Below are positions 19,601 to 63,925 of a stretch of DNA of 64,000 nt, piece by piece. The DNA is taken from positions 186,001 through 250,000 of the forward strand of contig NW_003314326.1 of the NCBI RefSeq assembly GCF_000143415.4, given 5' to 3'. Position numbers and translations under genes: made by a program. The notes beneath the pieces are model-generated. The model saw nothing but the letters and a program-made list of their open reading frames with translations, did no database searches and was not told where the DNA came from. The number at the start of each line of letters is the position of its first letter. Position 1 is the first letter of the stretch. This DNA comes from Selaginella moellendorffii. Its lineage: Eukaryota > Plantae > Lycopodiophyta.

Positions 19601-21709
19601 ATGCGCACCATCGTGTGTGGGCGCAAGCATGCTGCTGTAAGTCTCTTGCTCGCGCATCGCCTCCCAGATCTTGCTGCTCGCGACGTCTCCACCAAGGCAG
19701 CAGGTCAGCTGCTGTGCGCGCTCAAGGCATGCGGCAGCATTGGCGATGTGGAGCTGGGGAGGAAGCTCCACTGCGATGCTGCCCACGACGCCATTGTCAC
19801 CGGCATTCACGTAGCAAACACGCTGCTGAGCATGTACGCGAGATGCGGCAGCCCCGCGGATGCTCGCGCCGTCTTCGTGGCCATCCCGCGCCCTGATCTC
19901 GTCTCCTGGAACGCGCTCGTCCTGGGCCTGGCGATCAACGCTGGCTACCAAGCCGAGGCTCTTCACTTGGTGGAGGAGCTCATGCCGGCTTGTGATGCCC
20001 GGACCTTTGTAGCGGCAATGGTGGCTTGTGCGAGCCTGGCAGCACGACAAGGAGATCGCGATGGCCTGGAGTTGCTGGACAGGGCCATGGCTCTACACTC
20101 CCGGGCTCTGAGTAGCGGCAACATGGACTTGTTTGTGGCCAACTCCGCGGTGGATATGTATACCAAGTGTGGCAGCTTGCTGGATTCCAGGATGGTCTTC
20201 GATAGGATGCCGTGCCATAGCTTGGTGTCGTGGAATTCCTTGATATCGGCCTGTGTCGACAACGAGGAAGCCGAGCTCGGGCTCCAGCTCTTCCACACAG
20301 TGTCGGATCATGGATGGGAGCCGAATGCTCGGACGTTTGTGGCTGCTCTTTCCTGCTGCTCGTCACTCATATCCAAGCAAGGCAGTACTCCCGGAGAACC
20401 AAACGTAGTATGTTGGAAGGAGGAGGTTGCGAAAATCCACTCTCAAGCTGCTGGGACCGGCTGTGACTCGCAACTCTTTGTAGCAAACTGTTTGATCGAC
20501 GTGTACGCGAGCTGCGGCAGCTTGCTAGAGGCTCGAGCGGTGTTCAACAAGATGCAAGTCCGTAGCGTCGTCTCGTGGACAGCTCTACTTTTTGGATACG
20601 TCCACAACGGGGAAAGCAGGGCCGGACTGGAGCTGTTTTCGCGCATGCAAGCTCAAGGCTCCGTAACTCCAAATGCCTGCACGTTTGTAGCGGCTCTCAT
20701 GGCTGTCTCGGCTCTGGCGGAAGAAGAAGCAGGCAAGCTTGTCCGTGGAAGGCTTGTCAAAGTGAGCAGCCTGGAGTACGGGATGGGTTTACACTCCCAG
20801 CTTTGCAAGGACGCGGCTGCAGTGACGGACATATATGTGGGAAACAGCATCCTTGTCATGTACACCAAGTGTGGCAGCATGCTGGATGCTCGTTGCGTCT
20901 TTGATACCATCTCCACTTGGGACACCGCATCGTGGAACTCGCTTCTCCTCGGCTACGCTGAGAATGGAGAGGCAGAACTATGCCTGGAACTGTTCGCAGC
21001 CATGAAGCCATCAGTCGTTGCAATCGCCCCGGATGCTCGGACTCTCGTTGCTGCACTCGTTGCTTGCGGGAGCCTTACTTCACTTCAAACTGGAAAGTTT
21101 CTCCACGGGGAGATTTGCAGGCACGGAATGGAGAGGGACGTGTTCTTGGCAAACAGCCTCATTGACTTGTACAGCAAATGCGGGAGCCTAGCCAATGCAG
21201 AACAGGTTTTCGATTCGACAAGCACCAAAAACTCGGTGACTTGGAGTTCACTGATTGCGGGATATTGTCAAGCAGGAGACGGAAATGATGGAGCCGCTTT
21301 CGCGCTTGAGCTCTTGTCCCTGATGCGTGAACTTGGCCTGGAACCCAATGATGTTACCTTTCTGTCGCTTCTCACGGGATGCAGCCGAGCGGGGCTTGTT
21401 AACAAGGGAAGGCAGTGCTTCCGAGCTATGATCTCGCAACACAGGATCAAGCCTCGCATCGAACACTACCACTGCATGATCGATATGCTGGGCCGTGCTA
21501 ATCGCCTGGAGGAGGCCATGTCAACGCTGGAATCCATGCCTTTCTGTGCAACTCAAGTCACCTGGACTATCATCTTGGCAGCGTGTCACAAATGGAACAA
21601 CGTAGAGCTGGGGACAAGGGCTTACCACAAGCTGCTTGACATGGACGAGAGCCAGATCGCGGCATACGTGCTCATGTCCAACATCTACGGGATCAATGCA
21701 AGAGCTTGA
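19601..21709 (+). CDS. PLS-class PPR protein with E extension
   Basis: 702-aa intronless ORF with P-L-S triplets; HYHCMIDMLGRAN...WTIILAAC...YVLMSNIY. Confidence 0.95.
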   Translation: MRTIVCGRKHAAVSLLLAHRLPDLAARDVSTKAAGQLLCALKACGSIGDVELGRKLHCDAAHDAIVTGIHVANTLLSMYARCGSPADARAVFVAIPRPDLVSWNALVLGLAINAGYQAEALHLVEELMPACDARTFVAAMVACASLAARQGDRDGLELLDRAMALHSRALSSGNMDLFVANSAVDMYTKCGSLLDSRMVFDRMPCHSLVSWNSLISACVDNEEAELGLQLFHTVSDHGWEPNARTFVAALSCCSSLISKQGSTPGEPNVVCWKEEVAKIHSQAAGTGCDSQLFVANCLIDVYASCGSLLEARAVFNKMQVRSVVSWTALLFGYVHNGESRAGLELFSRMQAQGSVTPNACTFVAALMAVSALAEEEAGKLVRGRLVKVSSLEYGMGLHSQLCKDAAAVTDIYVGNSILVMYTKCGSMLDARCVFDTISTWDTASWNSLLLGYAENGEAELCLELFAAMKPSVVAIAPDARTLVAALVACGSLTSLQTGKFLHGEICRHGMERDVFLANSLIDLYSKCGSLANAEQVFDSTSTKNSVTWSSLIAGYCQAGDGNDGAAFALELLSLMRELGLEPNDVTFLSLLTGCSRAGLVNKGRQCFRAMISQHRIKPRIEHYHCMIDMLGRANRLEEAMSTLESMPFCATQVTWTIILAACHKWNNVELGTRAYHKLLDMDESQIAAYVLMSNIYGINARA

Positions 21710-21971
21710 GTCGGTCCGATGAGCAGCAAACAATGCAGCCCAAGCAACGGAGTCGGGAGTGAATGACATGGTTATAGCTACACGTTAAGGCTTGATGTGA
21801 ATCAGCCAACTCCTTTCTCAGTTCTCTGATATGCTTCCATACTCTCAGGGCTTATGCTCTTTGCGTGTGAGTATGTGTGGCTCCAGCTTGTACTAGTAGT
21901 AAGTTCTTCCCTCTTGCTGCTTCACTTCCGTGTCTTTGATGATGACGTGCTGCTGATCACTTATGGTCCAA
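21660..21971. repeat. Left copy of a direct duplication (PPR/PPR junction plus decayed PPD4 3' end)
   Basis: 21660-21772 matches 23354-23477, and 21784-21971 matches 24774-25080 with deletions (gttaaggcttgatgtgaatcagccaactc; gtgtggctccagct.gtact.gtagtaagttct). Confidence 0.9.
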
Positions 21972-21984
21972 GAATACAAAGGTT

Positions 21985-23225
21985 ATGTGTGGAAGAAAGG
22001 TATATAAGAAGCGCTTTTCATATATACATATTGTCATGGGCTCCATGTTGGCTCGGCACGGGTGCTCGAGTTCGGTGGTGTACTCAAGTAGATTTTTCAA
22101 CCGGGAGATGGAGATAGCTAAGGTGGACAAGTTGTTGCAGCCGTCAGTCTTCGGTGACGCTGGGAAGGTTGTGACCATTCTCGGTCCCAAGGATTCGGGT
22201 AAGACGGCAGTGATTCGCGAGTTCCGCCGTAGGCAGAGCTTGGGGCTGGTCTCGGGGGTGTCTTCCTACATCCATTTGCGGCAGAGTTACAACTTGTCCC
22301 CCGCGAACTTTGCCAACACTTTGTGGACGAGCCTTGGGCAGTCTCTGGGGCAGAAAATCGACGCCGATGCAAATATGAAAACTCTGAAGCATCAGATTGG
22401 TTGCAAGTCATGGGGTATTGATATTGACGACAAGTTATTCAAGGTTACCACTCCTCAAAGAACCGCCTTGCATAGTAGGGAGCGGGCTGATGCAATGGCA
22501 ATGGTGTTTGAGGCTTTACCCCACTACTGCATGGACGTGGTGAGGGATTTTCTGAATGGCTACACTGGTGGCTTTCCAACGGCTTTCATCGATGAAGCCA
22601 ACGTTCTTCAATACTGGCATTCTCGCGAGATGGATGAGCTGATGCGGCAGATAGTCAGGTTCTCCAAGCAAGAGTGTGTTGCAAACGTTGTCTTGCTATC
22701 GTCTGAGAACTTCTTCACGCAGTGGGATTGATCACATGCTGGATGTCCAAGGTCACCGAACGAGATCTGTGACCATAGGAAACTTCCCCAAGGATGAGTC
22801 TCTGGCTTTTGTGGGACAGCAAGCCGGGCCCGAGAGACTGGCCAAGGTGCAAGTTCTGTGGGACGAGGTGTTCGACCACATCGAATTCTGCGAACAGGTA
22901 AAGTGCGCTCATGTGGATAAAGTGGAGGAGGCATGGGAGGCCTGGAAGGAAGTAACAATTGGCTGTGAACTCAACGAAAGTTTTTTCTCTCGACATGACA
23001 AATGGACGCGAAAGACGTTCCTTGAAGTCTTGAAAAAGGTCGTGATGGTATTGTCCCGTATGCGGAGCTCCTTGAGCACCAGGATACTGTAAACTCTATG
23101 TTAGAACGCAACCTGCTGCAGTACAGGACTAATTGGACCTGTCATGGATGTGGCTGTCAAGTGGAACTACCCGATCATCATCCCAAGCAATGGCCATGAA
23201 AAAGCTTCTCTCTCTCAACTCTTGA
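21985..23225 (+). pseudogene. Frameshifted intronless P-loop NTPase (archaeal-ATPase/STAND-like) with a C-terminal helical domain
   Basis: FFNREMEI, Walker A GPKDSGKT, Walker B AFIDEAN, NVVLLSSE. Frameshifts near 22725 (FFTQW/IDHML...VTIGNFPKDES) and 23040 (DGIVPYAELL...SMLERNLLQYR). Confidence 0.75.
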
Positions 23226-23390
23226 TATGACTCTACCCTTTGTTCTTTCCTTTTTCAAGGAAATAAAAATGTGCGTCACGGCTGACAAATCGTTATGCCT
23301 TTCTTATGCAGCTCATCTTCGCAGCGGGAGAACGCTTTTCCGCACGCTGGTGACGGCATACGCGTGTGCTCATGTCCAACATTTCCGGCA

Positions 23391-24623
23391 TCAATGCCCA
23401 AGGAAAGAGCTTGAATGGATTCGATGAGCAGCAAACAATGCAGCCCAAGCAACGGAGTCAGGAATGAATGGCATGGTGTCAAGGAGCTCCTGTGCCATCT
23501 CTACACGTCCAGCTCGCCCCAAGAGGCACACCACGGAGCAGAAGTGCTCCATTGCAGGAGCTATTCCATGGTCGCCCGCCATGAGCAGGAACAAATGCCG
23601 GGCTTGTTCAAGAAGACCAACATCGTTGCTAGCAGCTAGAACACTCAACACTGACCTCTGGCTCACGTCCGCCCCTTCCATTGTCATGGTGCGAAGCAGC
23701 TGGATCGATTGCGTGTAGCTGCGGCGTTGCGACTGTGCCGCTCCCATGATGTTCCAGGAAACTGTATCACGCTCGGGCATGGAATCAAACACTTGTTTTA
23801 CAAACTCGACGTTTCCGTACTGGCAATTGATTTGGAGCAATCCGGTCCAGGACACCAAATCTCGCTCCGGCATTGAGTCGAACACCAGCTTTACGCCCTT
23901 CAAGTCGCCATTGCGGCAATATGCAACGAGGAGAACGTTCCATGTTACCAACGTCGACTCGGGCATCTTCTCAAAGGTGGTCATTGCCGCTTCCAAATGC
24001 CCAGAAGCGGCATAAGTGTAAACCATAGCCGTCCATGCCACGACATCGCACTGGGACATAGAAGAAAACACGCATGCCGCATTTTCTACGTGCCCCGCGC
24101 TTGCAAAAGCACGCAGCATGGTGGTCCAAGACGCAAGATCCTTTTCCGGCATCGAGTCATACGTGTGCTTTGCAGCGTGTAGATGCCTGTTTGAGGCATA
24201 CGCCGCAAGCAAAGCGTTCCATGTCACAGTGTTGCGCTCCGGCATTAAATCAAACAGGGCTTGAGCCTCATAAACGTTACCTCGTTTTGAGTAGGAGTGG
24301 ATCATAACTGTCCAAGAGACGACGTTTCTGGCCGGCATCCGATCAAACAGAACTCTAGCTTTCTCCATATGCCCATTACGGACATATGCCTCGAGCACAA
24401 TGGTCCACGAGAACACGTTGGGTCCGGCCATGCAACAGAAGACACGCTCAACCTCGTCGAGGCAGCGACACCTACTGTACATCTTCATCACCAAGTTGAT
24501 GAGATATGTGTCATCGCCAAGCCCGCTCGCCACCATCTGCCTGTGGAGCAGTCGAATGCGCGACGGCTCTGTGGAGCTCCCCAGAAGCGAGCTGAAGCGC
24601 CTCCGTGTGCAAGCGAGTTCCAT
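23391..24623 (-). CDS. PLS-class PPR protein, E region truncated
   Basis: 410-aa ORF of ~31-aa repeats; HFCSVVCLLGRAG...DSVAWAALFAAH, then an early stop. Confidence 0.88.
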   Translation of the reverse strand: MELACTRRRFSSLLGSSTEPSRIRLLHRQMVASGLGDDTYLINLVMKMYSRCRCLDEVERVFCCMAGPNVFSWTIVLEAYVRNGHMEKARVLFDRMPARNVVSWTVMIHSYSKRGNVYEAQALFDLMPERNTVTWNALLAAYASNRHLHAAKHTYDSMPEKDLASWTTMLRAFASAGHVENAACVFSSMSQCDVVAWTAMVYTYAASGHLEAAMTTFEKMPESTLVTWNVLLVAYCRNGDLKGVKLVFDSMPERDLVSWTGLLQINCQYGNVEFVKQVFDSMPERDTVSWNIMGAAQSQRRSYTQSIQLLRTMTMEGADVSQRSVLSVLAASNDVGLLEQARHLFLLMAGDHGIAPAMEHFCSVVCLLGRAGRVEMAQELLDTMPFIPDSVAWAALFAAHRIHSSSFLGH

Positions 24624-24791
24624 GTACCGCTAAGCTAAGCCATTGCCGTGTGTCACGGCCTCTAAGAAAGTGACAATCGTTTCCAAGGTGTCTGTCTATA
24701 GTGAACAAATGCCGCCACCTGGTATCGCTCTATAGAAACATCTGGACTCTTGTAATCTACAACTAGAAACAATGTTAAGGCTTGATGTGAA

Positions 24792-25783
24792 TCAGCCAAC
24801 TCTGAACGAATCCTGGATGCTTCGCAGTTCCCTGGCATGCTTCCGCCATTGGAGTCCTACACAAAGAGAGAGAGATAGATTGGAACACAGAACTTCGTGA
24901 GAAGAAAAACTTACCGCTCGCGTTGACAGACATGAGATAGAGCCTGTTCCCAGCGGCTGTTGCCGTGATGAGTACGTGTGGCTCCAGCTCGTACTGGTAG
25001 TAAGTTCTCCCATCGTACTGCTTCACTTCCATGTCTTTGACGCTGCCCTCGATGTTCTTGCCGGTCACCTCTGGCCCGAACGCGTCGATCACCTTCTCTG
25101 GTGGTCCGATCTCTTCGATCTTGGCATTGTCATCGATTGCTGCCACCATCCAAATCGATATGAGTCTAGATGCTTTGAGACACTCTAGCTACTCACTGTC
25201 TGAAAATCTCCTCACGGGAGCCACAACGACTGCGATGCTGCCTTCTTCGCTGCTGGCAAACCGGAGGTCAATCTCGGTTCCACCCAGGTCCGCTATAGAC
25301 ACGGGAACCTGTGCATTACGAAAGTATATTGCGGATGGACATGGAGAATGTTCACGGAGCCTACCTCTTGCCAGTTTTGTGGAACTCGGAAAGAGTATGG
25401 TATCATGGGACTCCAGCCCACGCCATGGCCGCCAGATTTCTCATCGGGTCTTCGGTACGTTCTGATGCCTGTACAATGAAAGATGTGATCTTGGAATCAA
25501 TGGAAATTTCACTCTCACCATTCTCGTCAGGAAGGGAAAGGCCGGGAACGCGTCCCGCAAGGAGGGTTTGTGACACCGCGATTGCCTCTTGGTGGTGGAC
25601 GCAGCTTTGGTGGAGAATGAGCGATCCTCCAGCCAGGAGGAAATTCCTGCGGTGGGTGCTATGAAAACCATTACCACACTCGCCTTGCACATCGCCCGAG
25701 GAAAGAGCTCGCGCTAGTACTCGCAATCGCAATCGTAGCGCCGGCACGCAGCCAAGGCGTCCACCACCGCAAGCCAGGGCCAT
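24792..25783 (-). CDS. PPD4: PsbP domain-containing protein 4, thylakoid lumen
   Basis: RR-type transit peptide, AGRVPGLSLPDENG, RTYRRPDEKSGGHGVGWSP, VPVSIADLGGTEIDLRF, FGPEV, HVLITATAAGNRLYL, GLQWRKH. Confidence 0.92.
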
Positions 25784-25879
25784 CACTTGGACCTAGAATA
25801 TGCGAATCTCGATTGCATTTGGTTGGAGAAATCCTGGATGATAAAGTTGCAAATTATAACACTTGAGTGAAATATCCAG

Positions 25880-26190
25880 GAGCGATCATTCCGCATGAAT
25901 GGTGTTTTTGCAGGCAACGTCGATCTTCCTCCCTGCCACACCTGGAACGGCTAAAGGTCGTCGCGCCAAAGATAAAGAAATCCGCATATAAAGTCCAAAG
26001 TTCTCGCAGGGTACTTGTTATGGTTGTAGAAAATGAGCAAGATAGCATCCCAGTGGTCAGCTTGGCCAAAGTTCTTGCAGGGTACTTGTTATGGTTGTAG
26101 AAAATGAGCAAGATAGCATCCCCAATGGTCAGCAACAACTTGTCTATCTCCATCTCCCGGTTGACAATATCTCGAAAACGCGCTCACACA
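25880..26190 (-). pseudogene. Highly decayed, inverted remnant of the same P-loop NTPase family
   Basis: Minus strand reads tcaaccgggagatggagatagacaagttgttgc, versus ttcaaccgggagatggagatagctaaggtggacaagttgttgc at ~22096-22139. Weaker matches to ~22288-22365 follow. Confidence 0.65.
25995..26133. repeat. Two-copy 71-bp tandem repeat
   Basis: ccaaagttct(c/t)gcagggtacttgttatggttgtagaaaatgagcaagatagcatccc at 25995 and 26066. Confidence 0.9.
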
Positions 26191-26287
26191 AAAAGAATCA
26201 GGAGCGATCTCGGCCGTTGAACGCTTGAAGAATCCACGGCGAGGTGGTTACGCCTTTATATTGCTGACTTGGCACTACTGTGGTGGC

Positions 26288-26297
26288 GCCACGTGTC
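26288..26297. promoter_or_regulatory. G-box/ABRE-like motif upstream of CPR
   Basis: GCCACGTGTC about 250 bp before the CPR ATG. Motif match only. Confidence 0.35.
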
Positions 26298-29618: not shown

Positions 29619-29822
29619 TTGCTTTACCTGCGAAGTGATTGAAACAAGGAAACGACGTACACTACGAATTTTGTAGTTAGCATTCATTGAGAGACGAATT
29701 GTCTCTTGCTGTATTCAACCGACTCCAAACCATTTCACCCATTAATTAACGCAACTTCATACTTTGTGCTTGCGAAGTAAACGTGAATCAATCTCAATGC
29801 AATAACACTTTGTTCACTTGAG

Positions 29823-35583: not shown

Positions 35584-36622
35584 ATGGCCGTCTTGATTTG
35601 TGTGCGTCATGGTGAGACGACATGGAACGCCAGCGGGAAGCTCCAGGTATGTGTGTGTCGATCGATCGATCGGCTACCATGGCATTGACGATCATGGATC
35701 CTATTTTTTTTTCTTTCTTTTTTGTTGTTTTTTTTCTTCTTGTCAGGGACAATTGGAGACCGATCTAAACGACGCTGGAAGGAAGCAAGCATCCGCTGTA
35801 TGTTGAAAAGACTAGAATGCAGCCAAGAGTCTGTGGAGGTCAGGATGATCAAAGCGATCTCTCTCATTTTTGTCTTTTGGTTTTCGTCCTCTCAGCTTGC
35901 GGAACATTTGGCTAAACAAAGCTCGCAGAAGATCACAGCGGTTTACTCGTCGGATCTTCGCCGTGCATCAGACACGGCCCAGACAATCGCTGAAAAGCTG
36001 GGATTGTCACAGGTAGAGCATGCTTCTCCCATGTGTTCTTGAGAATGTCAAACGTTTTCTTATGGCTTTTGCAGGTGAGCACGACACCACTGCTTCGAGA
36101 GCGGCATTTGGGCAGGCTCCAAGGCCTGACGCCAAAGCAAGCTCGCGAGAGAGAAGCCCACGCGTTTAAGATACTCGCCTCTTCGTCCGGCGACGAACCC
36201 ATCCCGGTGAGAACTAAGGCTCAGTGTTGTGAGTGAGCTCACAGATGGTTTTCTCAGGGTGGAGGGGAGAGCTTCGGTGAGATGCGCGATCGCGCGGCAA
36301 GAGCGGCTGAAGACATTGCTCGGCAGCACGAAGGTATTCCTAGATCTTCTCCGATCGACACACCCGTTTGATGAGTGTGTGGTCTCTTCTCTTTCTTCAA
36401 GGCGAGAGAGTGGTGGTGGTGACGCACGGTGGTGTTCTTCAGTCCATGCATGTCACCGCGACGGGCAAGCCAGCGCCGGGCCGTGTCCCCAACGCGTCGA
36501 TCAATGTCTTGAGCATCTCTAGCGACAACCAGTGGAAGTTCCAGTCGTGGTGCGACGTGGAGCATCTCAAGGGCGTTGGCTTCTTGTCCTCGGCATTTGG
36601 AGGTGGCGCCAAGTCGGGCTGA
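35584..36622 (+). CDS. Histidine phosphatase / phosphoglycerate mutase-like protein
   Basis: MAVLICVRHGETTWNASGKLQ/GQLETDLNDAGRKQA, VYSSDLRRASDTA, LRERHLGRLQG, GGGES, VVVTHGG, WCDVEHL...FGGGAKSG*. Confidence 0.93.
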
Positions 36623-36654
36623 CCCTCTCTTCTTTCCAATTGAGACTCTCCATT

Positions 36655-36855
36655 CTTTAGCAGCCTACGGTCCTGTGCTTGCACTGTCCATGCTCGAATC
36701 CTCAGTGGAAGATGCGTCTTTCTGATCCCGGAAAAGGCAGAGATCCGAACATCATGATCCAGGCGTATGCCCGGAATGCGTATACTGCTCAAGCCATGAA
36801 TTTCTTTCACCAAACAGGTCACTTGGACTCCTGAAACGTAATCACTCGCAAATGA
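36655..36855 (+). pseudogene. Decayed duplicate of the 5' end of the PPR gene at 39763
   Basis: gcagcctacggtcctgtgcttgc...tcatgatccaggcgtatgcccggaatgcgtatactgc..agccatgaatttctttcacca matches ~39776-40165 with many deletions. Confidence 0.9.
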
Positions 36856-36899
36856 ACGTAAGGAGTGTGTGCATCTTTACATCAGCATAAATTCTAGGA

Positions 36900-39083: not shown

Positions 39084-39459
39084 ACCTGATGTGCATCACT
39101 GATCCACTTGTGATGGAAGGATCGGATTGCTGGCGACTCTGGCGACTCTGGCGACTCTGCAAAAATTACTTCATGTCTCAATCAAATTCTCTTCATTCTG
39201 CATTTGTCAAGTGCCCTGCAAACATTTCTCCTCGCGACGAAAGATGTTCATCAGCTCCTGGGAGACCTTCAAGGCATCCGTGAGCAAGAGAGGATGCTGT
39301 TAGCAACTTTCGGCGGTAAACAACTCGTATAGCTTTTTATTCGAGCCCTGGGATCTTCTAATCCAGATTCAATCCGGACATGCTCAAGAGGGAATCTTTG
39401 TCAATGGTACTTAGCGATCTTATCCCTCGAAGGAGCAATCTATGAAGGCTTTGGGCCAT

Positions 39460-39720
39460 AGCAAGCTCGCGTGAGAGAAGCACACGCGTTTCGCCTCGAC
39501 GGGGTGAGAACTGCCTCTAAGTAGCGATATCTGTCACTGTGAGTGAGCTGCAAGAGCACAAATGCCCTACACCGAGTGTGGTATGTGTCTGTTCTTTAGT
39601 GGTGGTGACGCACGGTCACGGTCACGGGCAAGGCAGCCGCTTCGTTCAATGTCTTGAGCATCTCTAGCGACAACCAGTCGTGGTGCGACGTGGAGCATTT
39701 CCTTGTCCTCGGGACCCCTC
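39460..39720 (+). pseudogene. Decayed duplicate of the 3' half of the histidine phosphatase gene
   Basis: agcaagctcgcgtgagagaagcacacgcgttt, gtggtggtgacgcacggt and tcaatgtcttgagcatctctagcgacaaccagtcgtggtgcgacgtggagcat match 36137-36625. Confidence 0.92.
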
Positions 39721-39762
39721 CATTCCATCCAAAGAATCCACACTCACAATTCCTTAGAATGA

Positions 39763-50598: not shown

Positions 50599-52989
50599 CT
50601 AGCCACATTGGCTGGAGATCGTCGAGAGCAGCAAATAGTGAGATGGGTTACTGGAATCTATCTCCATGGCACGCCCAGCGGCAAATCTCGCCCTCTCCAT
50701 GTCCTGGTGGATCCGGCAAGCCCCCAAGAGAGCTCCCCACGCTATGGTGCTCGGGGAGATGGGCATGCTCGTCACTATCTCCTCGGCCAGCTCCATCTTG
50801 CCGGCTCGCCCAAGCATATCGATCACGCAAGAGTAGTGTTCCTTGGATGGAACCACGCGAAAGTCATCCACCATCGACACGAAAACCTGGCGAGCTCGGC
50901 TCATCGATCCGACATGACTACAAGCGGACAAGACCGTCATCAGCGTGATCTCGTCGGGTGGAGCGCCCTCCAAGATCATTGTCTGGAACGCATCCAGAGC
51001 CTCGGTGTGGAATCCATTCGAGTCGTAGGCCTTGATCATCGCGTTCCACGACACGGCATTCCTCTCGGGCATCTCCTCGAAAAGACTCCTCGCCTCGTCC
51101 ATATACCCCTTTTGGGCATACACGGAAACAATGGCCGTCCACGTTATCACACTCCTCTCCGGCATCTCCTCAAAGAGAGCTCGAGCTCGATCCAAATGCC
51201 CATTCTGGGCATTTCCCACAATCACCACCGTGACCGTCACCGTGCTCCACTCGGGCATTCGCTGGAATCCAGCCTCGGCCTCCTGGAGCCGATCGTTCTG
51301 CGAGAGCGCTGCGATTACCGCAGTCCAGGAGACGCCATCTCGCTCCTCGGCTGCATCAAAGAGCTCCTTGGCTTGCTGCGGGCATTCAAACCGAGCGTAA
51401 GCGGAGATCATCGTGTTCCAAGACAGGAGCGCGTTGCTGGGCAATCGATCAAACACGAGCTTCGTCTCGGCGAGCTCCCCGGCCTGGGACAAGGAGTGGA
51501 GTAGCCACGTCCAGTGGCTCCTCCCGCGCTCGGGCATGGAATCAAAAACTTGCCTGGCTCTGGCAGTGTCGGATCTCCTCACAAACGCATTGAAGAGCGC
51601 GTTCCAAGTCGCCACCCTGTGCTGTGGCATCCGCTGGAACATGAGCTCCGCTTGATCCGCGTGACCGGCCTCGGCGTGAGCTTGCATCATGCACGTCCAC
51701 GACACCACGTCCCTGTGAGGCATCGAATCGAACAAGCTCTTGCAGTGGGCTTCGTGGTGCTCTTGGCCATCGCTGCTGATGTTCTTGGCATCTGCTGCGA
51801 GGAGAGAATTCAGCGTCACCAGGTTCATAGCCGGCATTCGATCGTATAGCATCTTGGCCTCGTCGGTCTGCCCGGCTTCGACGTAAGCTTGCATCATCGC
51901 GTTCCAAGACAAGAGGTCGCGCTTGGCCATCCTCTCGAAAAAGAGGCTCTCGGCCTCTCTCACCATGGCACCTGTGTGAGCGTACGCTGCGATCATTCCA
52001 TTCCACGAGGAAAGATCTTTCACTGGCGCTTTCTGGAACAGGCTCTCGGCTTCCTCGATCATCCCATTCTGCGCGTAGGCCTGGATCATGGCGTTCCACG
52101 ACACAACGTCCCGGTAGGGGATCTTGAGGAAGAAACTCTCGGCGCCCTCGACGCAACCATCGTTAGCAAAGGCCGCGATCATCGTCCCCCACGAGACCTC
52201 GGTCCGGCAGGGCATGCTGTCGAACCCGGCCTTTGCTCCCTCGGGATCGCCCTTGAAAGCGTGAGCGGCCAACAACACATTCCACGACACCACGCTGCGA
52301 TCAAGCATAGCATCGAAGATCTCTTTGGCCTTGTCGTAATGCTCACTGTGAACGTAAGCAGTCATCATAGTCGTGCTTGCAATCGGGCTCCAAACTGGGA
52401 TCTTCTCAAACACTTCGCGAGCGTTGTGCACAAGCCCGTTCTGGGCAAATGCTTGTATCATCCCGTTCCACGACACAATATTCCTCTCCAACGAAGAATC
52501 AAACATTCTCTTTGAAGTATTAACTTCTCCATTCGATGCATACGCAGATATCATAGCATTGCACGACACAAAATTCCACTGAGGTGTTAGAAAGAAAGCT
52601 CTTTCAGAAAATTCCAAATGCCCACCTTGGGCAACTGCTGCTATAATGGCATTCCAAGAAACCACGTCTCGCACGGGCATCCGATCGAAAATCTTCTGCA
52701 CCTCCTGGACGGCGCCATTGTCGGCGTAGGCTTGGATCATGATATTCCAGGAGAAGACATTGGGCTCCTGGGTCGCTGCAAACACGGCCTCGGCATCTTG
52801 AGGGCGGCCGCATTTTCCATACATCTGGACGAGGAGATTGCGGAGGAAAGTGTTGTGGGCGTGATCGCTGGCTTGGATCTGAGCGTGGATGCGCTTTCCC
52901 TCTGCCAAATCCTTGGCCGCCGCGCAATGCTTGAGGCTCCTGGCAAAAAGATCTTGCTGTTGCTTCCGCTGCAACAAAGCTAGGCTCAT
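50599..52989 (-). CDS. PLS-class PPR protein with E extension
   Basis: 796-aa intronless ORF; HYSCVIDMLGRAG...WGALLGAC...YLLLS. Confidence 0.95.
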   Translation of the reverse strand: MSLALLQRKQQQDLFARSLKHCAAAKDLAEGKRIHAQIQASDHAHNTFLRNLLVQMYGKCGRPQDAEAVFAATQEPNVFSWNIMIQAYADNGAVQEVQKIFDRMPVRDVVSWNAIIAAVAQGGHLEFSERAFFLTPQWNFVSCNAMISAYASNGEVNTSKRMFDSSLERNIVSWNGMIQAFAQNGLVHNAREVFEKIPVWSPIASTTMMTAYVHSEHYDKAKEIFDAMLDRSVVSWNVLLAAHAFKGDPEGAKAGFDSMPCRTEVSWGTMIAAFANDGCVEGAESFFLKIPYRDVVSWNAMIQAYAQNGMIEEAESLFQKAPVKDLSSWNGMIAAYAHTGAMVREAESLFFERMAKRDLLSWNAMMQAYVEAGQTDEAKMLYDRMPAMNLVTLNSLLAADAKNISSDGQEHHEAHCKSLFDSMPHRDVVSWTCMMQAHAEAGHADQAELMFQRMPQHRVATWNALFNAFVRRSDTARARQVFDSMPERGRSHWTWLLHSLSQAGELAETKLVFDRLPSNALLSWNTMISAYARFECPQQAKELFDAAEERDGVSWTAVIAALSQNDRLQEAEAGFQRMPEWSTVTVTVVIVGNAQNGHLDRARALFEEMPERSVITWTAIVSVYAQKGYMDEARSLFEEMPERNAVSWNAMIKAYDSNGFHTEALDAFQTMILEGAPPDEITLMTVLSACSHVGSMSRARQVFVSMVDDFRVVPSKEHYSCVIDMLGRAGKMELAEEIVTSMPISPSTIAWGALLGACRIHQDMERARFAAGRAMEIDSSNPSHYLLLSTISSQCG

Positions 52990-53124
52990 ATCCTTCCCGG
53001 GCCATGGGCGCGGCTACAGGTGTGCCGTGGGACGTCGCAGACCCATGGCGCGATCAACACACCGTGTGCGCGGGAATAAAGGCCATAATTTGAAAAGGGG
53101 CCCTAGGGTTCGTGGTCAGTGGCG

Positions 53125-55071
53125 ATGGCGAAAGACGTGGGAATTCTCGCAATGGAGGTCTACTTTCCCGGCGTGTGCGTCAACCAGGTACTGTGATCTT
53201 TCATGTGGATCCATGATCGATGATTGACGATCGATCGAGCGATCGCTTTTCAGGTAGACTTGGCGAGGTTTGACAAAGTGCCGCCAAAGTACTACACCGA
53301 AGGCTTGGGACAGGAGCGCCTGGCTTTCTGCGAGGACACCGAAGATGTGATCTCCATGAGGTGCTACGATCGCACAAGTTCTCTCAGGGAACGCAAGCCT
53401 CTTCATTAGAATTCTCGTTCTAAGTTTGTTTGATAGCTTGACAGTGGTCAAATCGCTCTTGGAGAATTATAACATATCTCCTTCAAGCATTGGACGGCTC
53501 GAGGTTGGAAGCGAGACCGTGATTGACAAGAGCAAGTCCATCAAAAGCTACCTCATGCCTTTGTTCGAGGTGAGATGAGACTGAGATCGTCATTCATCTT
53601 TGGTCTATGTAACGTTGGTTAAAAACCTGGACAGGAGAACAGTGGCATTGAAGGCGTTGACTCCACCAATGCTTGCTATGGAGGAACCGCAGCGCTCTTC
53701 AACTGTGTCAACTGGATCGAAAGTCGCTCATGGGACGGAAGGCTTGCGATCGTTGTAGCCGCAGACATTGCGGTAAGTTTTCGATCATGGAGCTAAACCG
53801 GTGACCAGCACGTCAATTGCAGGTTTATGCTGAAGGCACTGCTCGTCCCAGCGGCGGTGCTGGTGCGGTTGCCATGCTTGTAGGACCGAACGCGCCGCTT
53901 GTTCTCGAACGAAGCTATACCGGAACGTACATGGCTCACGTCTATGATTTCTACAAGCCTGACTTAAGCAGTGAATATCCGGTACATTGCTACATCTCCG
54001 TCGTTTTCCTTTTTATTTTCTCACTTTGAATTGTGCTGTCGTCCAGGTGGTCGACTCCAAACTATCCCAAAAGTGCTACCTCAAGGCATTAGATGTGTGC
54101 TACAAGAGATACTGTGAAAGGTGTGAATCGTGTTTCGTTATCGCGCATGCTTCTTAAACATGGATGCAGATACGAGAGCATCGAGGCGAGACCGTTCACT
54201 GTCCAGGAAGCAGACTTTCTAGTCTTCCATGCACCTTTTAACAAGGTTTGGATCCTTTGGCGATTTCCGATGTATTCATTTAGTCTATTCCAGCTCGTTC
54301 GGAGAAGTTTTGAGCGGCTGCTGTGGAATGACTACCAGCGGGACTGCAGGTATCTCTTTACAAAACCTTGTTCTTGACTATGGCGTATTCACCGTAGGAC
54401 CTTGTGTACAGTTCTCTGGGAGAAGATGGAGAAAAACTCAAACCATTTCAAGGATTGACGGCAGACAGCATCGTCAGCAATGCAAGTCTCAAAGAGGTGA
54501 ATTACAAATCTGTGGAGTTTTTTTCTCACGGGCCGAATGTCTCTTACAGGTCATGAAAGCTGTAGCGGAGCCTGGATATGATGCAAAGGTTTCCCCTTCG
54601 ACGCTGATTCCGAGACGAGTCGGCAATACGTATTGCGCATCACTGTATGCTGGCCTAGCTTCCCTGGTCCACAACAAGGCCAGCTTACTCGACGATGGCC
54701 AAAGCATTCTCATGTTCTCGTATGGAAGCGGGCTGGCATCGTCTCTCTTTTCCATCCGCGTCAGAAGAGTGGAAGGTGTTCACAGCTTGGAGAACGTGGC
54801 CAAGACAATGGCAATCTCAGAGAAACTCGATTCTTGTGTTGCGGTACGCTGTCTTTCTTCGTTCTTATCACATATAAATTGTAATTTATGTTCGGCACGG
54901 CAGGTTTCTCCAGAAAAGTTTGTGGAGACGATGAAGATAATGGAGAGCCGATATGGTTCCAAAGACTTCGTCCCAATGGGTGATTTGGCAACTGTTAGGC
55001 CGGGAGCATTCTACTTGGCTGGAGTAGACTCTCTATATCGCAGGACCTACGAAAGACGAGCTCTAACTTGA
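53125..55071 (+). CDS. HMGS: 3-hydroxy-3-methylglutaryl-CoA synthase
   Basis: [51 protein letters not shown] (catalytic Cys), [40 protein letters not shown]. About 10 exons. Confidence 0.96.
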
Positions 55072-55229
55072 GTTAGAACTTCGAAGAGATTTTGTCACCG
55101 AAAACTTCGTATTAAAAGATCTCAAAAATGGTAGTCCGATAAAACCAGTAACGAGGATTCTCACGCTCGAATTCTCATCTGTTCTAGCCGGATCACGACG
55201 CCATAAAAAAATCGTGTCAAACATGTCAA

Positions 55230-56075
55230 CGAGCCCGTTGCGGACGTATGCTTGAATAGTCCCATTCCACATACGATTTTCCGTTCCAACACCCAAGACA
55301 AGGACGGATTCCTGGCAGCTAGCGTCCCCGTAGAATCCATGGGAAGCGTTTTCATACTCGATGAGCTTCACGGCATTGCCAGCGTCTTGGCAGAGATCAT
55401 TTGTGACACGACACCAAGTTCCATTTCGGTGTCAAAGAAATAACCCGCTCTTAAGAACACAAATGCCCCTATTGGGCAGCTGCTGCAACGATAGCGTTTC
55501 AAGAGACCACGTCTCGCACGGGCATTCGATTATACACCGGGAATGTCTGGAGACATACAGAAAACACGCCCTCGGCGACAAGCACTACTGGCGACGTTAA
55601 GGCGGTTCACTCCTCAGGCATTCTAGCTCAGTCGTCCCTCCAGGCTTGGGATCACTTGATCCAGACTCGGCGTTGCCTGTGCAATCAGGGCAAGAATCGC
55701 CACTAGAAACACAAAACACTATGTGAGATCTGGTAGGAATTGCAGGGATCATGTAACAGCTTTAAAAGGCCAACAGGAAACATGCGACATCAGTCTGTCT
55801 CGTCCCCTGGCATGCCTGGAGTATATTCTCCTGCATATTGGCGGGAAGATTTCCACCAATACTCTGCAACACTAGAATTCGTTGCAATGTTTAGGACAAA
55901 CCTTAACAAGAATACAAATGCTCGCTCTACAAAGATGGCGCCCCTGGTAGTATGCTACATTGGGCTCGCGATTTATAGCAAACCAGCCCTGGGCAGTGTT
56001 GAGGGCACTTGCCAAAGGAGCTGGCGAATCCTTGGCCGCCGCGCAACGCCTGTCAAAAAGATCTTCCTGTTAAAG
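55230..56075 (-). pseudogene. Decayed duplicate of the 5' part of PPR 50599-52989, interrupted by ~400 bp of unrelated DNA
   Basis: accacgtctcgcacgggcat (~55506 vs ~52661) and aatccttggccgccgcgcaa...aaaaagatctt.ctgtt (~56027 vs ~52908). Confidence 0.8.
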
Positions 56076-56279
56076 TATCGCATATCCTGTCATGGTCATC
56101 GTTGTCACGAAACCAGAGGAGGAGATCCGGGCCATCCGATCCCGATCTAACGGCTCTAACTGACTGCTTCTTCATTTACAAAATTGTACAAGCCACTCCT
56201 TTGTCTCTGTAACAAAAGATAGCGCTCCTTTTCCACGCCAAGCGAGCGAGCGAGCTAGCTAGCTGCCTATAGCCTCTAC

Positions 56280-58319: not shown

Positions 58320-58856
58320 TCTCGATCGATCTCTCCGCGCCGGGAGCTGGGAGGCGAGGGAGGAGGATTGAAAGAGAGAAACAAGAAGAACGCTCTCCTC
58401 CGCCTCTCTCTTTCTCTCTCTCTCTCCTTTTCTTTCTCGTCCTCCTCTCTGGAGCGTAGCAGAGGTAGGTTGGCTGGCTGCGTTGGCCGGTCGGGGGTTC
58501 GAGTCTCGCCGGCTACGCCCGACGTTAGAGCTGCCGCCATGCATCTCGGGATCGATTCCTCTCCCACTCGCCAAGGCTTTCTTCTCTCTTTGTTTGCATG
58601 AGAGAGAGAACGAATTTTGGATGAGGAGGATGGGTCCAATGTCGCTGTCACCATGACGACAAAGTACGCTCTTACGATGTGATTGCATTTGCCAATTTTT
58701 TTGTATGGTGCATTGGTCCATCTGTCTAAATGCCAAAGTGCCCTCCCTCATCTTTAGGAAAGGGGGAATATCTTTCGAATTACTACCGGGTCAAACCTTC
58801 TAACTGGCGGGGAGGCGTTCGATTCCCGCGACTGGCAATTCTCAAGAAGCTTGGCT

Positions 58857-60154
58857 ATGGCGTTTGCCCTCGCAGCGTCTCCTCTTCCCTCCAGGCCCGG
58901 CAGTCTGCCGCGGCTGAGGAGAAATCGCAATCTCGTCGTGGTGCCAGTGCGATGTCGGTCGCAATTGCAATCGCAGCATCGCCGCCTGGTGCTGCGGCTG
59001 TGCGCCACCACAGAGACGAAAGAAGCTGAGAAAGAAGAAGAGGACGCGCTCGCTGCTGATGAATCCGGAGGAGCCAGTGGCCGCATTGGCGATGGCAATG
59101 GAGATTCCGGCGATGGCGGCGGGGATGGATTGAGGTGGCTGTCCAATGCGCCAGTGTATGTTCTATGGGCGGGATTGATTGGGTACGCTTTCACCATGGC
59201 TCCAAACCAAACACCGGTAAGAGGATAGCTTAGAGGATTGGAGTTTTTCTTCCTTTCTCGATGGTTTCCAGTTCCACCACCAATTCCATTCAGTACAGGG
59301 ATCAATTGTTCGTGGAGAAGCTGCTGCTCTTGCGAGGCGACGAAGGTTTCTCGATCAACCCGGTGCTTGTCACAGTCTGGTTTAGCATGGGCCTTCTTCC
59401 ACTCATCTATGCGATGCTTCTCATCCCCACTGGAAGAAGGTAGGTACTTGAAGTTTCGATTTGGAAGAACAAAGCTCACGAAACTTTGCCACTTCCAGTG
59501 AGAAAGGTGGCGTTCCTGTGTGGCCGTTTTCTCTCGTTTCTTTCTTCACGGGGATTTTTGCCTTGTTGCCGTACTTTGGGCTGTGGAATCCACCGCCACC
59601 CCGCGTAACCAAGCAAGAGCTCAGCACCTGGCCTCTCGTGGTGCTGGAATCAAAAATCTTGTCTTTTGTAAGTTTGTCTCGATTTCTTCCTCAACTCTTA
59701 GTGTGATTTTGATTTTTTTTTTCCTTCTCGATCGATGTGTATCCAGTTTGTAGCCGCTTGCGCGCTTGGACTGGCCGCGAAAGCAGCGCTTTCCAACAGT
59801 GAGAGCTGGAGTCAGTACTTAGGATTTTTCCGAGAGAGCCGATTTGTAAGGATTTCAAGTTGCCGAGTTTGGCGTGACTTGGATCACCGGTTTTTTGTGC
59901 AGATTCACGTGATGAGCATCGACTTTGTCTTGCTTAATCTGCTCGTGGTCTTCTGGGTGTTCAACGATATCACGTTTCGGAGGTAACTCGAGTCGAGTCG
60001 AGCTTGTGAGCACTGATAGAATCTTCATCTTCATTGGTGCTTTTCCAGGTCCAATAACTCATGGCTGATTCCAGTGTCCATCATTCCACTCGTTGGTCCT
60101 GCATTATATCTCCTCTTGAGACCCGGCTTGCCGCCTCAAATGGTCGACGAGTAA
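58857..60154 (+). CDS. Conserved plastid integral membrane protein of unknown function (cyanobacterial-type)
   Basis: Transit peptide; APNQTP/YRDQ...PLIYAMLLIPTGR/VPVWPF...FALLPYFGLW/FFRESRF/IHVMSIDF...ND/IPLVGPALYLLLRP. Six exons. Confidence 0.85.
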
Positions 60155-60257
60155 TGTTTTGTATCCAGGCAATCAATCTTTTTCTGGTCGGTCGAGATTT
60201 CCGGGAATTCGTTGGGCTTGCCGCTTTTGCATTCGTTGTCGGCACTGTCATGTCAAA

Positions 60258-60445
60258 GTGCACATCTTCAATTCCCAATCAAGCTTCGAGTTGATCGCGT
60301 CCACGATCACGGGACACTTGCAGCTCACACGTATTGGTTTTGGTCTTTTGCTTTGCTTCAAGACAAACTTGGTTACCTCTGCTCTCGTCAATCCGAAGTT
60401 CCTGCAATGAGTTTCGATCAAATTTTACTCCCAGTTGAAAGTTCT
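60258..60445 (-). pseudogene. Decayed duplicate of the APX 3' end and its downstream flank
   Basis: LGVKFD..RIDES versus [19 protein letters not shown]; tcttcaatt.ccaat.aa.cttcga and gtccacgatcac match ~62357-62575. Confidence 0.85.
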
Positions 60446-60850
60446 GAGATCGTGCCGTGATCTCTGGCATATGGCCCTCCTGGGAACAAACTTTCTCATC
60501 TTTCGTAAGTGCTATGACAGGGTCCACCTAGAGGAAATTTTTCAAGGGGGAGAATTTTTAACCTCTTGTTCCAGAATCTATAATTTATAAATTATTCCCA
60601 TGGTCTCAATAAGGAGTTTGAAGAGTAAATGTTTTATAACAGCTTATAAAAAATCTATAGTGTCCATTAACTTTCTCTTCTTTTTCGGATACCAGCGTGG
60701 GCACTCCACACTGACGAAGCTCTTCACTAGAGAACCCCCGCAGTTCATCGATTTCATCGATTCTCTCCTTCAGTAAAACTTCCATCGCTTTGTCTACCAG
60801 TTCACCTTTTCCTCGCGACACCAGGAAATCCTGACCGTCCGTTTGTCATT
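60279..60850 (-). pseudogene. Small SAM-like-domain ORF divergent from the NTPase, possibly spliced onto the APX-derived remnant
   Basis: DFLVSRG...KAMEVLLKERIDEIDELRGFSSEELRQCGVPTL, then a GT donor; AG acceptor at ~60528. No clean upstream ATG. Confidence 0.4.
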
Positions 60851-60897
60851 TGTATACTATAAGTCCCGAAGAACCCTAATTCCTTTTACGTAGCGCA

Positions 60898-61975
60898 ATG
60901 AAGCAACTTGTGGGCAGGGAGAGGGAGCTGCGCGACTTGCTAGGCTACGTGGAACGGCGCATAGATAAGATTGTGCTTCTGCAGGGGCCGGAGCTCTCCG
61001 GCAAGACGGCTCTTCTGCGGGAGCTTCGGGCTGTCATGGCTTCCAAGTATGGCAGAACGATCCCCGTCTACCACCTCGATCTCACTTGTTTCAGGATGAC
61101 GGATGTTCTCGAGTGGATCCAAGGTACCGACAATTTTCTCATGGAAGATTCCAAAGACTTGACAATCCTAGAGGTGATAGAGGAGATACTAGCTAGTGAG
61201 CATCAGCTCCAGCCAGTTTTTATCATCGACCAGGCTGAAAGGATTCCCGAGATCTTTCCACAGCCACGGGCACTGATAGAAGTCCTTGCGAAGATTGCAC
61301 GGGAGAGGAGAGGGGTGGTGATCCTGGCGAGTCTAGACGACTCTTTGCGGGAGGATTGGCATGACCAAGTTCTTCCCTTTCACTTGGGATACTTCAGCGA
61401 GAAGGCCGCTAGGGCGTTTCTTCGTAAGCGAAGGGCAGCGGAGGACAGGAGACCGTGGTGGCAGCGGTGGTGGTCGAGGAGAGATCTAGTTAGTGACGAG
61501 GAATGGCGCGAGATATACCCCGTTTGTGGTGGCTGCCCCAGGTTGCTTGGATTTTGCGTCTCCCCATACCCGAATCTTAGCGCAATAGTTGGCTCCGTGG
61601 TTGGGGGCGTACACACCGGACTGGAAGGCAGGGATGGCGAGTAAGTGATAGATATCTTGTTTCTAAGAAGTGCTTGGATCTAATCATTTGTGTTTTTGAT
61701 GGTGATCATCTAGGTGGGAGGGGGACAAGTACCGAAGGGTGGCGGAGCTGCTCGTGGAGAACGAAGGGAGCTTGGAGTGGTCTGTTGTTCTGGACAAGGT
61801 GTTTGGCAAGGATGTGAGCGAGGGGAGCTCTCAGCTCCGGGCCATGGCTGCTCGCAACATGATAAACGTCGAGTACTTGCCCGAGTCCAAGACCAAAGTG
61901 GTGATGGCTGGAAGTCCTGCGTATCTTTACGCCATGAGACTCGTGCTGGAAGGGAGAGATGAGCCGGATGTCTGA
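60898..61975 (+). CDS. P-loop NTPase (archaeal-ATPase/STAND-like) with a C-terminal winged-helix-like region; apparently intact
   Basis: LVGREREL, Walker A GPELSGKT, Walker B FIIDQAE, VILAS, LGYFSEKAARAFL, CGGCPRLL. One intron (61641-61713) restores the frame to WEGDKY...LRAMAARNMI...AGSPAYLYAMR. Confidence 0.82.
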
Positions 61976-62046
61976 CAATTCCTTCGTTCTATTCTTAAGT
62001 TTGATTTGATCTGGATGAACAAAACTATTGTTATTACAAAAACAGT

Positions 62047-62330
62047 AGAAAGGTGGCGTTCCTGTGTGGCCCTTTTCTCTCGCGAATGCTGGGTAGCCAA
62101 GCACGAACTCAGCACCTGGGCTGCTCGTGGAGCTCGAATAAAAAATCTTGTCTCGACTGTTTTAGATCTTTGTGAACAGCACGATCGATACGCGTACGCT
62201 TTATGGACACTTGCGGGCTTGGACTGGCCGCCAAAACAGCGCTTTCCAACAGTGAGAGCACGAGCTTGTGACAAATCCGACACTTGTCCAGTAATCTCAT
62301 CTCAGCTTGCATCTTTGGAGACTATTGTCC
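62047..62330 (+). pseudogene. Decayed duplicate of the 3' half of the plastid membrane protein gene
   Basis: gaaaggtggcgttcctgtgtggcc, ctcagcacctgg, aaaaatcttgtct, gcttggactggccgc and cagcgctttccaacagtgagagc match ~59501-60125. Confidence 0.92.
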
Positions 62331-62460
62331 GGAAAGAGCGATCGTTGTCAACACTAGTGCGCGTCTTCAATTGCCAATTAAACTTCGACTTCGTCCACGA
62401 TCACACTTGATCACGGGTATTATTCTTTTACTCTTTTCGCAAAAACTGTACTGGTTATGC

Positions 62461-63925
62461 CTAACTTGTGCTCTCGTCGATCCGGATTCCCTGCAACCAC
62501 ATCAGTCAGCCAACAAGGAGGAGAACAAGAGCTACAAACTTGAGGTGGATCGAATTTGGCTCCCAGTTCACTCAGCTTGGCATGCGCTTGAGCATAGTCC
62601 TTGAAGAACGCGTCCTGATCCTTGGCGTAGAGCTCGGCATGCTCCTGGAGATATACATTGAGATAAGTTTTTCTAATTTTCTTAAGTTGGTCTATTCTTT
62701 ACCTTGAATCCTGGATCTTCGAAAAGGACTGCGTCAGTTGGCAAGACGAGAAGATCTTCGTCTCTTTTCTCCTTGATATCCTGCATACGATACAACCGGC
62801 GTTCACTACTATCCAAATTTTTTTTTCGTCCTTGGAATAAAGTCTACCTTGAAATATGAATTGTCAAATTTCAGCCATTCCACAGTCCAGGACTGGCCTC
62901 CTGGAGCTCCAGGTCCGTCTTTCTATCATGGTCTCAAGCATCAAAATGTCATCGAAGCTTCTGAAAGAACCACTTTCGTTACCGTGTATTTCGTTTCCTT
63001 TTTTCCCCAGCCACTCCGTTCTGGTCTAGATCGTCCCAAGGTATGAGCACCTGACAGGGCAACAATGTCCTTGGTATATCAAGGCGATGAGTAAAAGTCT
63101 GCTCAAGCCAGGAAAATTCTTCAAAGCGGAAAGCGCACCTTGTCATCCAGTCCCATCCTGTGAAACACTTTGCGAAGGTGCTCGGAAGGATTTGGGGGTC
63201 CGGCACCTGGAAAGAAAATTAATTCCAGGCGTCAAAGAAACGGACATCATTTGTCGAAGTCCAAGTTGGCTAGCGCTTGGAAAACTCATTCTTACTTGGA
63301 AGGTTACCCTCCTTCGGGCATTGCTCTGGGCCTACGGTATCAACTCTTCCATATCGCATTGGAATCCGGGGTCCTCCAGCCATCTGATTCCATCACCTTT
63401 AGAAGTTTAGGCCGGCTTCTTTGTTCTTTCTTGATAAGTTTACCTCTATGGCGGTGGCGCTTGCAAGCTGGAAAAGATCGGCATAGCTTACTGCGGTGAA
63501 TTTCTCCTTCACGGGATTAAGCAGCTTGAGAGCATTTATGAGTCCTGCCGTAAGTTCGAAGGGATCGTTCCAAGCTTTTCGCAAGTTCCTAAAAGTTACC
63601 AGCATTCGCTCCATGTTCCAACTCGATAGGGAAGCGCAGGCTTCCATTGGCACCACCACACTTGGGCCACTCGCTGATGTTCTTGTCATACGTTCCAGCG
63701 TCGTGCCATCCCAATCTAATCTGTCGATTTGAAAGAGCTCACAAGGTTTGATCGTTGAAAAATAAAGAAAACAGTGCGAGTGTTTTTTTTGACACTTACT
63801 ACTATAGGATTGCAATGCATTTTCGTGATCACTTCCTTGATCGCTTCCCTCGCTCCCACTAGCTGATCGAGCTGAGACGCGATCCTCTGGGACGATTCCA
63901 CGGCGGCGGCTCCACTCCCAGACAT
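62461..63925 (-). CDS. APX: Chloroplast-type L-ascorbate peroxidase (5' end probably extends beyond the window)
   Basis: [120 protein letters not shown]. No C-terminal thylakoid anchor seen. Confidence 0.95.

Follow-up and report, generated by a model that had tools for sequence, protein, structure and literature searches.

How does a gene come to lie between two closely packed neighbours when pieces of both neighbours are found on each of its sides? The question is raised by a gene-dense, 64-kb stretch of the Selaginella moellendorffii genome (GL377630.1:186001–250000, hereafter the window), in which three genes for P-loop nucleoside triphosphatases (NTPases) each sit between direct copies of a junction of two neighbouring genes. 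The original prediction had read these NTPase cassettes as a candidate mobile or selfish element family. We mapped the junction repeats by repeat search, sensitive self-blastn and gapped local alignment, took gene structures from the public annotation and from direct reading of the sequence, and compared the window with the second haplotype of the same region (GL377637.1, fetched as L002, L003 and L005). The NTPase cargoes of loci 1, 2 and 3 are called ins1, ins2 and ins3; the cargo of a fourth locus is a gene for HMG-CoA synthase.

Duplicated gene junctions flank four genes in the window

At each of the three NTPase genes, self-blastn and gapped alignment identified flanking direct copies of the junction of two neighbour genes. 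The copies are collinear, about 80–90% identical in patches and reciprocally decayed: by annotation and sequence, gene A has its working end in the left copy, where gene B is broken, and in the right copy the situation is reversed. The self-blastn hits, alignments and gene calls thus bear out the three reciprocally decayed layouts that had been predicted. A Walker A scan of the window found P-loop open reading frames in the three NTPase cargoes only, so that every NTPase cassette of the window does occupy such a site, as had also been proposed. The borders of the predicted inserts are better placed at 21945–23353, 36829–39444 and 60511–62004. A fourth case, around the HMG-CoA synthase gene of locus 4, had been overlooked.

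The spacer between genes A and B is present in both copies at loci 2 and 3; A and B thus adjoined each other at the time of the duplication, and the cargo did not then lie between them. At each of the four loci, the cargo occupies the joint between the two copies, with no duplicate fragment split off on either side. The duplicated segments measure approximately 1.7, 0.7, 1.05 and 0.6–0.9 kb at loci 1, 2, 3 and 4, respectively, and the cargo segments 1.4–2.6 kb, each a single gene with minimal flanks. The cargoes look like ordinary host genes in different states, most of them from fast-turnover, immune-like NTPase families.

All four layouts were found on both haplotypes (GL377630.1 and GL377637.1). 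Their presence there, together with contigs of independent public runs over the borders of locus 3, ruled out an assembly artefact, which the original prediction had already thought unlikely. Apart from these four loci and a 71-bp tandem repeat, no further local direct duplication was detected in the 64 kb at the DNA or six-frame protein level. The 71-bp unit, repeated in tandem at 25995–26133 with 96–98% identity, is the sole cargo-free local duplication in the window. A pair of glycosyl hydrolase family 17 (GH17) genes at 9378–12008, in inverted orientation and with 37–48% amino acid (aa) identity, is an old inverted gene pair with no relation to the insertion layout.

Structure and state of the four loci

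At locus 2, the segment 36121–36828 matches 39445–40052 with 82.5% identity over 707 aligned columns. The left copy (36121–36828) contains the intact last exons of a His_Phos_1 phosphatase gene, the intergenic spacer and the decayed first ~170 bp of a 583-aa PPR gene, and the right copy (39445–40052) contains decayed last phosphatase exons, the spacer and the intact PPR start (ATG at 39763). Between them, on the plus strand, lies ins2 (36829–39444), a multi-exon NTPase-PHD gene of the Crinkler-like type with GT-AG introns (SELMODRAFT_424075). Its protein has a Walker A motif, a conserved middle domain and a PHD-like finger, and two distant Selaginella relatives (P0008 and P0009) share with it the order of P-loop NTPase, conserved domain and PHD finger. 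The annotated SELMODRAFT_424075 model starts downstream of the gene's own Walker A motif (at 37445; window 37199–37478). For a nuclease fold in ins2, the AlphaFold model had a mean pLDDT (predicted local distance difference test) of 33, too low for use, and P0005 had no Pfam match.

The ins2 region differs from its counterpart on the other haplotype (L005) by approximately 3–5%, with about 3% across the gene, and by some 20 indels, most of a length not divisible by three. Between the same haplotypes, the genes on either side and even the decayed pieces of the junction retain 98.5–99.3% identity. At least one ins2 allele is probably dead, and this comparison of alleles points to relaxed constraint, or to a raised mutation rate limited to the cargo.

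Locus 3 presents a different state. Here ~59455–60510 matches 62005–62656 with 79% identity over 681 columns. The left copy (59455–60510) consists of the intact last four exons and 3′ untranslated region (UTR) of a gene for a 319-aa membrane protein, followed by a decayed APX 3′ end; the right copy (62005–62656) consists of decayed membrane-protein exons, now APX 3′ UTR, and the intact APX 3′ end. The cargo, ins3 (60511–62004, plus strand), is an intact STAND-type NTPase gene of two exons (60898–61640 and 61714–61975; SELMODRAFT_424082) with the Walker A motif GPELSGKT and Pfam matches to AAA_16 (35.2 bits, cut-off 32.6), ATPase_2 (34.5, cut-off 33.2) and NACHT (27.5, cut-off 26.7). It is intact in both haplotypes, with a ratio of non-synonymous to synonymous differences (pN/pS) of 0.22 between them versus 0.10–0.24 for neighbouring PPR genes; on this comparison, purifying selection acts on ins3 as it does on its neighbours. 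Low-depth RNA-type contigs in one run covered ins3, amounting to weak transcription.

Contigs from public runs also trace both borders of locus 3: a DNA-run contig bridges the junction of left copy and cargo, an RNA-type contig bridges that of cargo and right copy, and no contig that skips the ins3 insert was found among the public-run contigs at this locus, the DNA run included. Spliced RNA-type contigs show that the membrane-protein transcript passes through the decayed APX piece and ends at ~60450–60605, and RNA-type contigs carry the APX transcript through the decayed membrane-protein exons to its end at 62008. The decayed halves (60155–60605 and 62008–62460) are therefore the 3′ UTRs of the two neighbours, whose ends lie within ~100 bp of the cargo borders. 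With both UTRs extending across the decayed copies as far as the cargo, the duplication appears to have kept two overlapping transcription units. The duplicated segment of locus 3 corresponds roughly to the former overlap of two convergent transcripts. A general model drawn from this locus, of nicks at the poly-A sites of convergent genes, was dropped, since the genes of locus 2 are in tandem and locus 4 lies inside one gene.

At locus 1, the segment 21660–21944 matches 23354–25040 in patches that are 83–100% identical (E values 1e-30 and 3e-20): 21660–21772 corresponds to 23354–23477 (83%), 21784–21812 to 24774–24802, and 21856–21939 to 24956–25040 (86%). In the left copy (J1, 21660–21944), the 3′ end of a 702-aa PPR gene is intact (stop at 21709); a 410-aa PPR gene, its 1.3-kb body gone, survives as a decayed 3′ stub, and the last PsbP exon as a decayed fragment. 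In the right copy (J2, 23354–25040), the 702-aa PPR gene is reduced to a decayed 3′ stub, and the 410-aa PPR gene (23391–24623, minus strand) and the PsbP 3′ end are intact. The layout predicted here stands, but the duplicated piece of gene A is only about 50 bp long. The cargo, ins1 (21945–23353, plus strand; SELMODRAFT_424070), is a pseudogene of an ATPase_2/AAA_16-type P-loop NTPase, with a Pfam match to ATPase_2 (35.3 bits, cut-off 33.2), AAA_16-type similarity and the Walker A motif GPKDSGKT. Relative to the paralog P0012 (39% aa identity), it is frameshifted near 22725–22748. The SELMODRAFT_424070 model masks this frameshift as a 65-nt intron (22654–22720), and homology to the paralog runs through the stretch.

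The second haplotype has lost 1254 bp at locus 1 (21815–23068, versus L003 12214/12222), a deletion that takes in the right-hand portion of the left junction copy and almost all of ins1. Its two ends share CTCCTT microhomology, about eight filler bases are present, and both junction copies remain, now 466 bp apart. This allele was considered as an empty site and rejected, as it is an imprecise deletion of a pseudogene that left both junction copies behind.

At locus 4, the segment 52400–53007 matches 55211–56095 on the other side of the HMG-CoA synthase gene. The left copy (52400–53007) comprises the intact 5′ 590 bp of a PPR gene (50599–52989, minus strand) and 18 bp upstream of it. The right copy (55211–56095), upstream of the 3′ end of a PI3/PI4-kinase gene, is a decayed 5′ piece of the same PPR gene, to which it has 64% aa identity, as against 38–46% to other PPR genes. 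The cargo segment (53008–55210, plus strand) is not an NTPase; it holds a complete HMG-CoA synthase gene with introns (53125–55071, 450 aa).

A probable passive insertion at gene junctions

We consider it probable, without regarding it as settled, that each locus records one old, passive, gene-sized insertion at a junction of neighbour genes, made by host break repair or replication and not by the cargo. The target would have been opened by two nicks, or spanned by a template switch, 0.6–1.7 kb apart. Gene-sized DNA would then have been captured or copied, and fill-in or re-copying would have placed the target segment on both sides of the cargo. Selection would subsequently have maintained A on the left and B on the right, leaving the redundant halves to decay by small deletions. 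Tight packing may account for the kilobase size of the duplications: where genes abut or overlap, only insertions that duplicate the junction would spare both neighbours, and survivors would for that reason carry such duplications. The original prediction had likened the layout to a giant target-site duplication that spares both neighbours, and the position of the cargo at the joint of the duplicated junction in every case supports that likeness. It had further proposed widely staggered nicks or break-induced copying that duplicates from about 0.7 to over 1.7 kb. A host-driven version of this, over 0.6–1.7 kb, is the one we favour, and spread driven by the NTPases themselves did not hold up.

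We infer that the insertion was a single event, by way of either a staggered break with capture or template switching. With the cargo at the joint in four of four loci and no duplicate piece split off, the layout argues for one step. Integration of a circle driven by homology is unlikely, since the repeats are a unique gene junction, which a foreign circle would not carry.

The strongest rival, which we nevertheless think unlikely, separates the two parts of the event: a plain tandem duplication of the A–B junction, for example from asymmetric nicks, would have come first, and the cargo would have entered the redundant DNA later. Tandem duplications of 10–1000 bp are frequent among rice insertions according to a published summary (PMC7407515), the redundant halves of the junction copies would offer a neutral landing pad, and locus 1 of the second haplotype, after the loss of ins1, resembles just such a pair of junction copies 466 bp apart. 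Against this sequence of events, neither the 64-kb window nor ~75 kb of other loci (~140 kb together) contains a cargo-free kilobase tandem duplication. Moreover, a later insertion at random would rarely fall at the joint four times out of four, never splitting a redundant piece.

Another history appears less probable still: A, B and the cargo would have been duplicated in tandem together, as one larger block, and deletions would then have eliminated one of the two cargoes and most of the surplus A and B sequence. Deletion is active in this region, as the microhomology-flanked, 1254-bp loss in haplotype 2 and the loss of the 1.3-kb PPR body from the left copy of locus 1 illustrate, and at a locus outside the window (L008, described below) an NTPase gene has undergone local segmental duplication. 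However, this history would require at least three precise events per locus, at four loci, and would have to leave remnants that are exactly junction-proximal and contiguous with the intergenic spacer. There is no trace of a second cargo copy.

The NTPase cargoes do not behave as a mobile element family

The original prediction proposed an undescribed mobile or selfish family of NTPase cassettes; on this reading the cassettes would mobilise themselves, their own proteins making the widely staggered cuts and giant target-site duplications. In its favour, all three NTPases of the window have the layout, and ins2 belongs to the NTPase-PHD family, whose nearest neighbours in the protein atlas include Crinkler-type proteins; an ins2 relative had a feature similarity of 0.89–0.93 to Mucoromycota clusters, one of them Crinkler-annotated, which is a lead only. 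The cargoes themselves were not borne out as a family. The three NTPase cargoes have no DNA and no ends in common, and at the protein level they share only the P-loop (Walker A). Paralog and donor searches, by word index and by an exhaustive HMMER search, covered these three NTPase cargoes. Among close matches, ins2 and ins3 each found only their own allele, and ins1 found its allele and the 39% paralog P0012. The NTPase cargoes are thus single-copy per haplotype, with no paralog above 40% aa identity, and the protein searches returned no orthologs outside S. moellendorffii.

The cargo borders have no terminal inverted repeats and no similarity to each other, and a Pfam scan of the cargoes found no transposase, integrase or reverse transcriptase, in agreement with the original prediction, which had seen no terminal inverted repeats, long terminal repeats, transposase or reverse transcriptase. 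The Pfam content of the NTPase cargoes was confined to P-loop NTPase families (ATPase_2, AAA_16, NACHT and nSTAND5) and a weak PHD/C1-type zinc finger. By Pfam, ins1 and ins3 contain no nuclease; both are plain ATPase_2/AAA_16/NACHT-like proteins with no second domain. The length of the duplication varies by locus, with no characteristic target-duplication length. The HMG-CoA synthase gene has the same layout as the NTPases, and ins3 evolves as a constrained host gene.

A retrocopy origin was rejected, as the cargoes retain GT-AG introns and have no poly-A tail. CpG depletion was considered as a mark of transposon-like silencing, and did not discriminate between cargoes and neighbours: observed/expected CpG was 0.77–0.83 in the NTPase cargoes, 1.02 in the HMG-CoA synthase cargo and 0.83–1.0 in the neighbours.

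We then compared loci outside the window (L006, L007 and L008), at which NTPase genes had been chosen by homology alone, with their architecture ignored. L006 contains P0012, the ins1 paralog; L007 contains P0015, a relative of ins2; and L008 contains P0013 and its 96.5% identical local duplicate. None of these four NTPase copies is flanked by direct duplications (0/4), the young duplicate included. That duplicate belongs to a young NTPase-PHD duplication (GL377565.1, 1–12379), in which 2634–5184 matches 9833–12379 with 96.5% identity. The same contig stretch holds an older inverted copy of the upstream gene region (1–2512 versus 6632–8482 inverted, 86–92%).

L007 (GL377630.1, ~458–463 kb) does contain a direct repeat pair of ~0.5 kb, 3645–4173 and 8309–8742, 82% identical in blocks. 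The pair stands beside the NTPase-PHD gene, not around it, and encloses a 4.1-kb segment with an intronless RtcB gene, located between a sucrose-phosphatase gene and the NTPase-PHD gene; haplotype 2 has the same arrangement. The segment is possibly a fifth duplicative insertion, which in that case would have entered a shared promoter region. The repeats had no Pfam match and may derive from a transposon.

Association of the layout with NTPases depends on the sample. Within the window it is found at 3/3 NTPases versus 1/~25 other genes (Fisher p ~0.001), in a window that was chosen for the pattern; with the extra loci included, it is found at 3/7 NTPases versus 2/~42 other genes (p ~0.02). In the outside sample, which was not chosen for the pattern, it is found at 0/4 NTPase copies, and NTPase enrichment is therefore not established. 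Taken together, these results largely refute a selfish NTPase family, which we regard as very improbable. Equally slight, in our judgement, is the chance that the STAND/Crinkler-like cassettes are relics of a new class of eukaryotic mobile genes, in which the element's own NTPase/nuclease or a dedicated host pathway would nick ~1 kb apart, and whose age, divergence and partial domestication would hide their resemblance.

Several observations weigh against passive insertion by the host. Protein searches found no donor or parent copy of the NTPase cargoes, and copy-paste therefore cannot be told from cut-paste. Neither haplotype showed an empty site carrying the junction once; the original prediction had suggested a comparison with the other haplotype for such sites, where all layouts are shared and the loss of ins1 is an imprecise deletion. 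Divergence of ~20%, with indels, blurs the breakpoints, which means that one step versus two is not provable. The window counts hint at a bias towards NTPase cargoes, for which a passive model can account only through gene-family turnover.

Implications for gene relocation in compact genomes

The layout shows one way for a crowded genome to take in a gene and lose neither of the genes beside it. How single, non-transposon plant genes relocate is still unsettled, and these loci are unusually clear footprints of it; they point to duplicative insertion, by a widely staggered break or a template switch, over homology-driven integration of a circle. They also suggest a simple rule for compact genomes: an insertion between neighbours with common UTRs or promoters would survive only if it duplicates what they share, so that large target duplications stay visible. 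With two diverged assembled haplotypes, Selaginella would be a good system in which to measure this genome-wide. The view of NTPase and Crinkler-like genes would not be altered, unless the cargo bias holds in an unbiased scan.

Comparison with known systems

Crinkler (CR)-type proteins combine an NTPase with a restriction-endonuclease-fold module, and derivation of this combination from transposons has been proposed. Ins2, P0008 and P0009 likewise join a P-loop NTPase to a following domain, and the Crinkler-related neighbours of the ins2 family in the protein atlas are Crinkler N-terminal families from Mucoromycota. Unlike Crinklers, ins2 has no Crinkler header.

Classical transposon target-site duplications, including the rare long ones of LINE-1, are also direct duplications of the target around inserted DNA. 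They are short and of fixed length per family, and belong to elements with defined ends and many copies, none of which applies to the Selaginella loci. Unlike LINE-1-type insertions, the Selaginella cargoes lack poly-A tails and retain their introns. In human structural variants, template switching by fork stalling (FoSTeS) or microhomology-mediated break-induced replication (MMBIR) generates duplication, insertion and duplication in one event. The outcome is the same as the Selaginella layout, but in such events the donor stays in place, and none was found for the NTPase cargoes.

In rice, insertions are commonly tandem duplications, for which asymmetric nicks have been given as the cause (Vaughn and Bennetzen 2014, as summarised in PMC7407515). 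In the patch-mediated double-strand breaks described in that summary, staggered single-strand breaks, fill-in and end joining duplicate the target, and some events carry ectopic filler DNA. The rice events it describes total 10–1000 bp and rarely carry a whole gene, whereas the filler in Selaginella is a complete gene of 1.4–2.6 kb.

The closest precedent is that of transposed Arabidopsis genes, which often lie between direct repeats, 15–400 bp long and mostly genic, that correspond to the target site (Woodhouse, Pedersen and Freeling 2010, PLoS Genet, PMC2869330). Fast-turnover families such as F-box, LRR and defensin genes are over-represented among them, and long target-site duplication was discussed there as one explanation, the preferred model being excision of a circle and homologous re-insertion (PMC2869330). 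Like the Arabidopsis genes, the Selaginella cargoes are single, non-transposon genes (NTPases with introns and HMG-CoA synthase), and their flanking repeats are target-site sequence, mostly genic, one copy of which is the working end of a neighbour gene. Unlike the Arabidopsis repeats, those in Selaginella are 0.6–1.7 kb long, span a whole gene junction and show reciprocal decay with both neighbours intact; an outgroup empty site is available only in the Arabidopsis case. We class the Selaginella loci not as a new mobile element, but as a kilobase-scale, junction-spanning and reciprocally decayed version, in a lycophyte, of the phenomenon described in Arabidopsis and rice.

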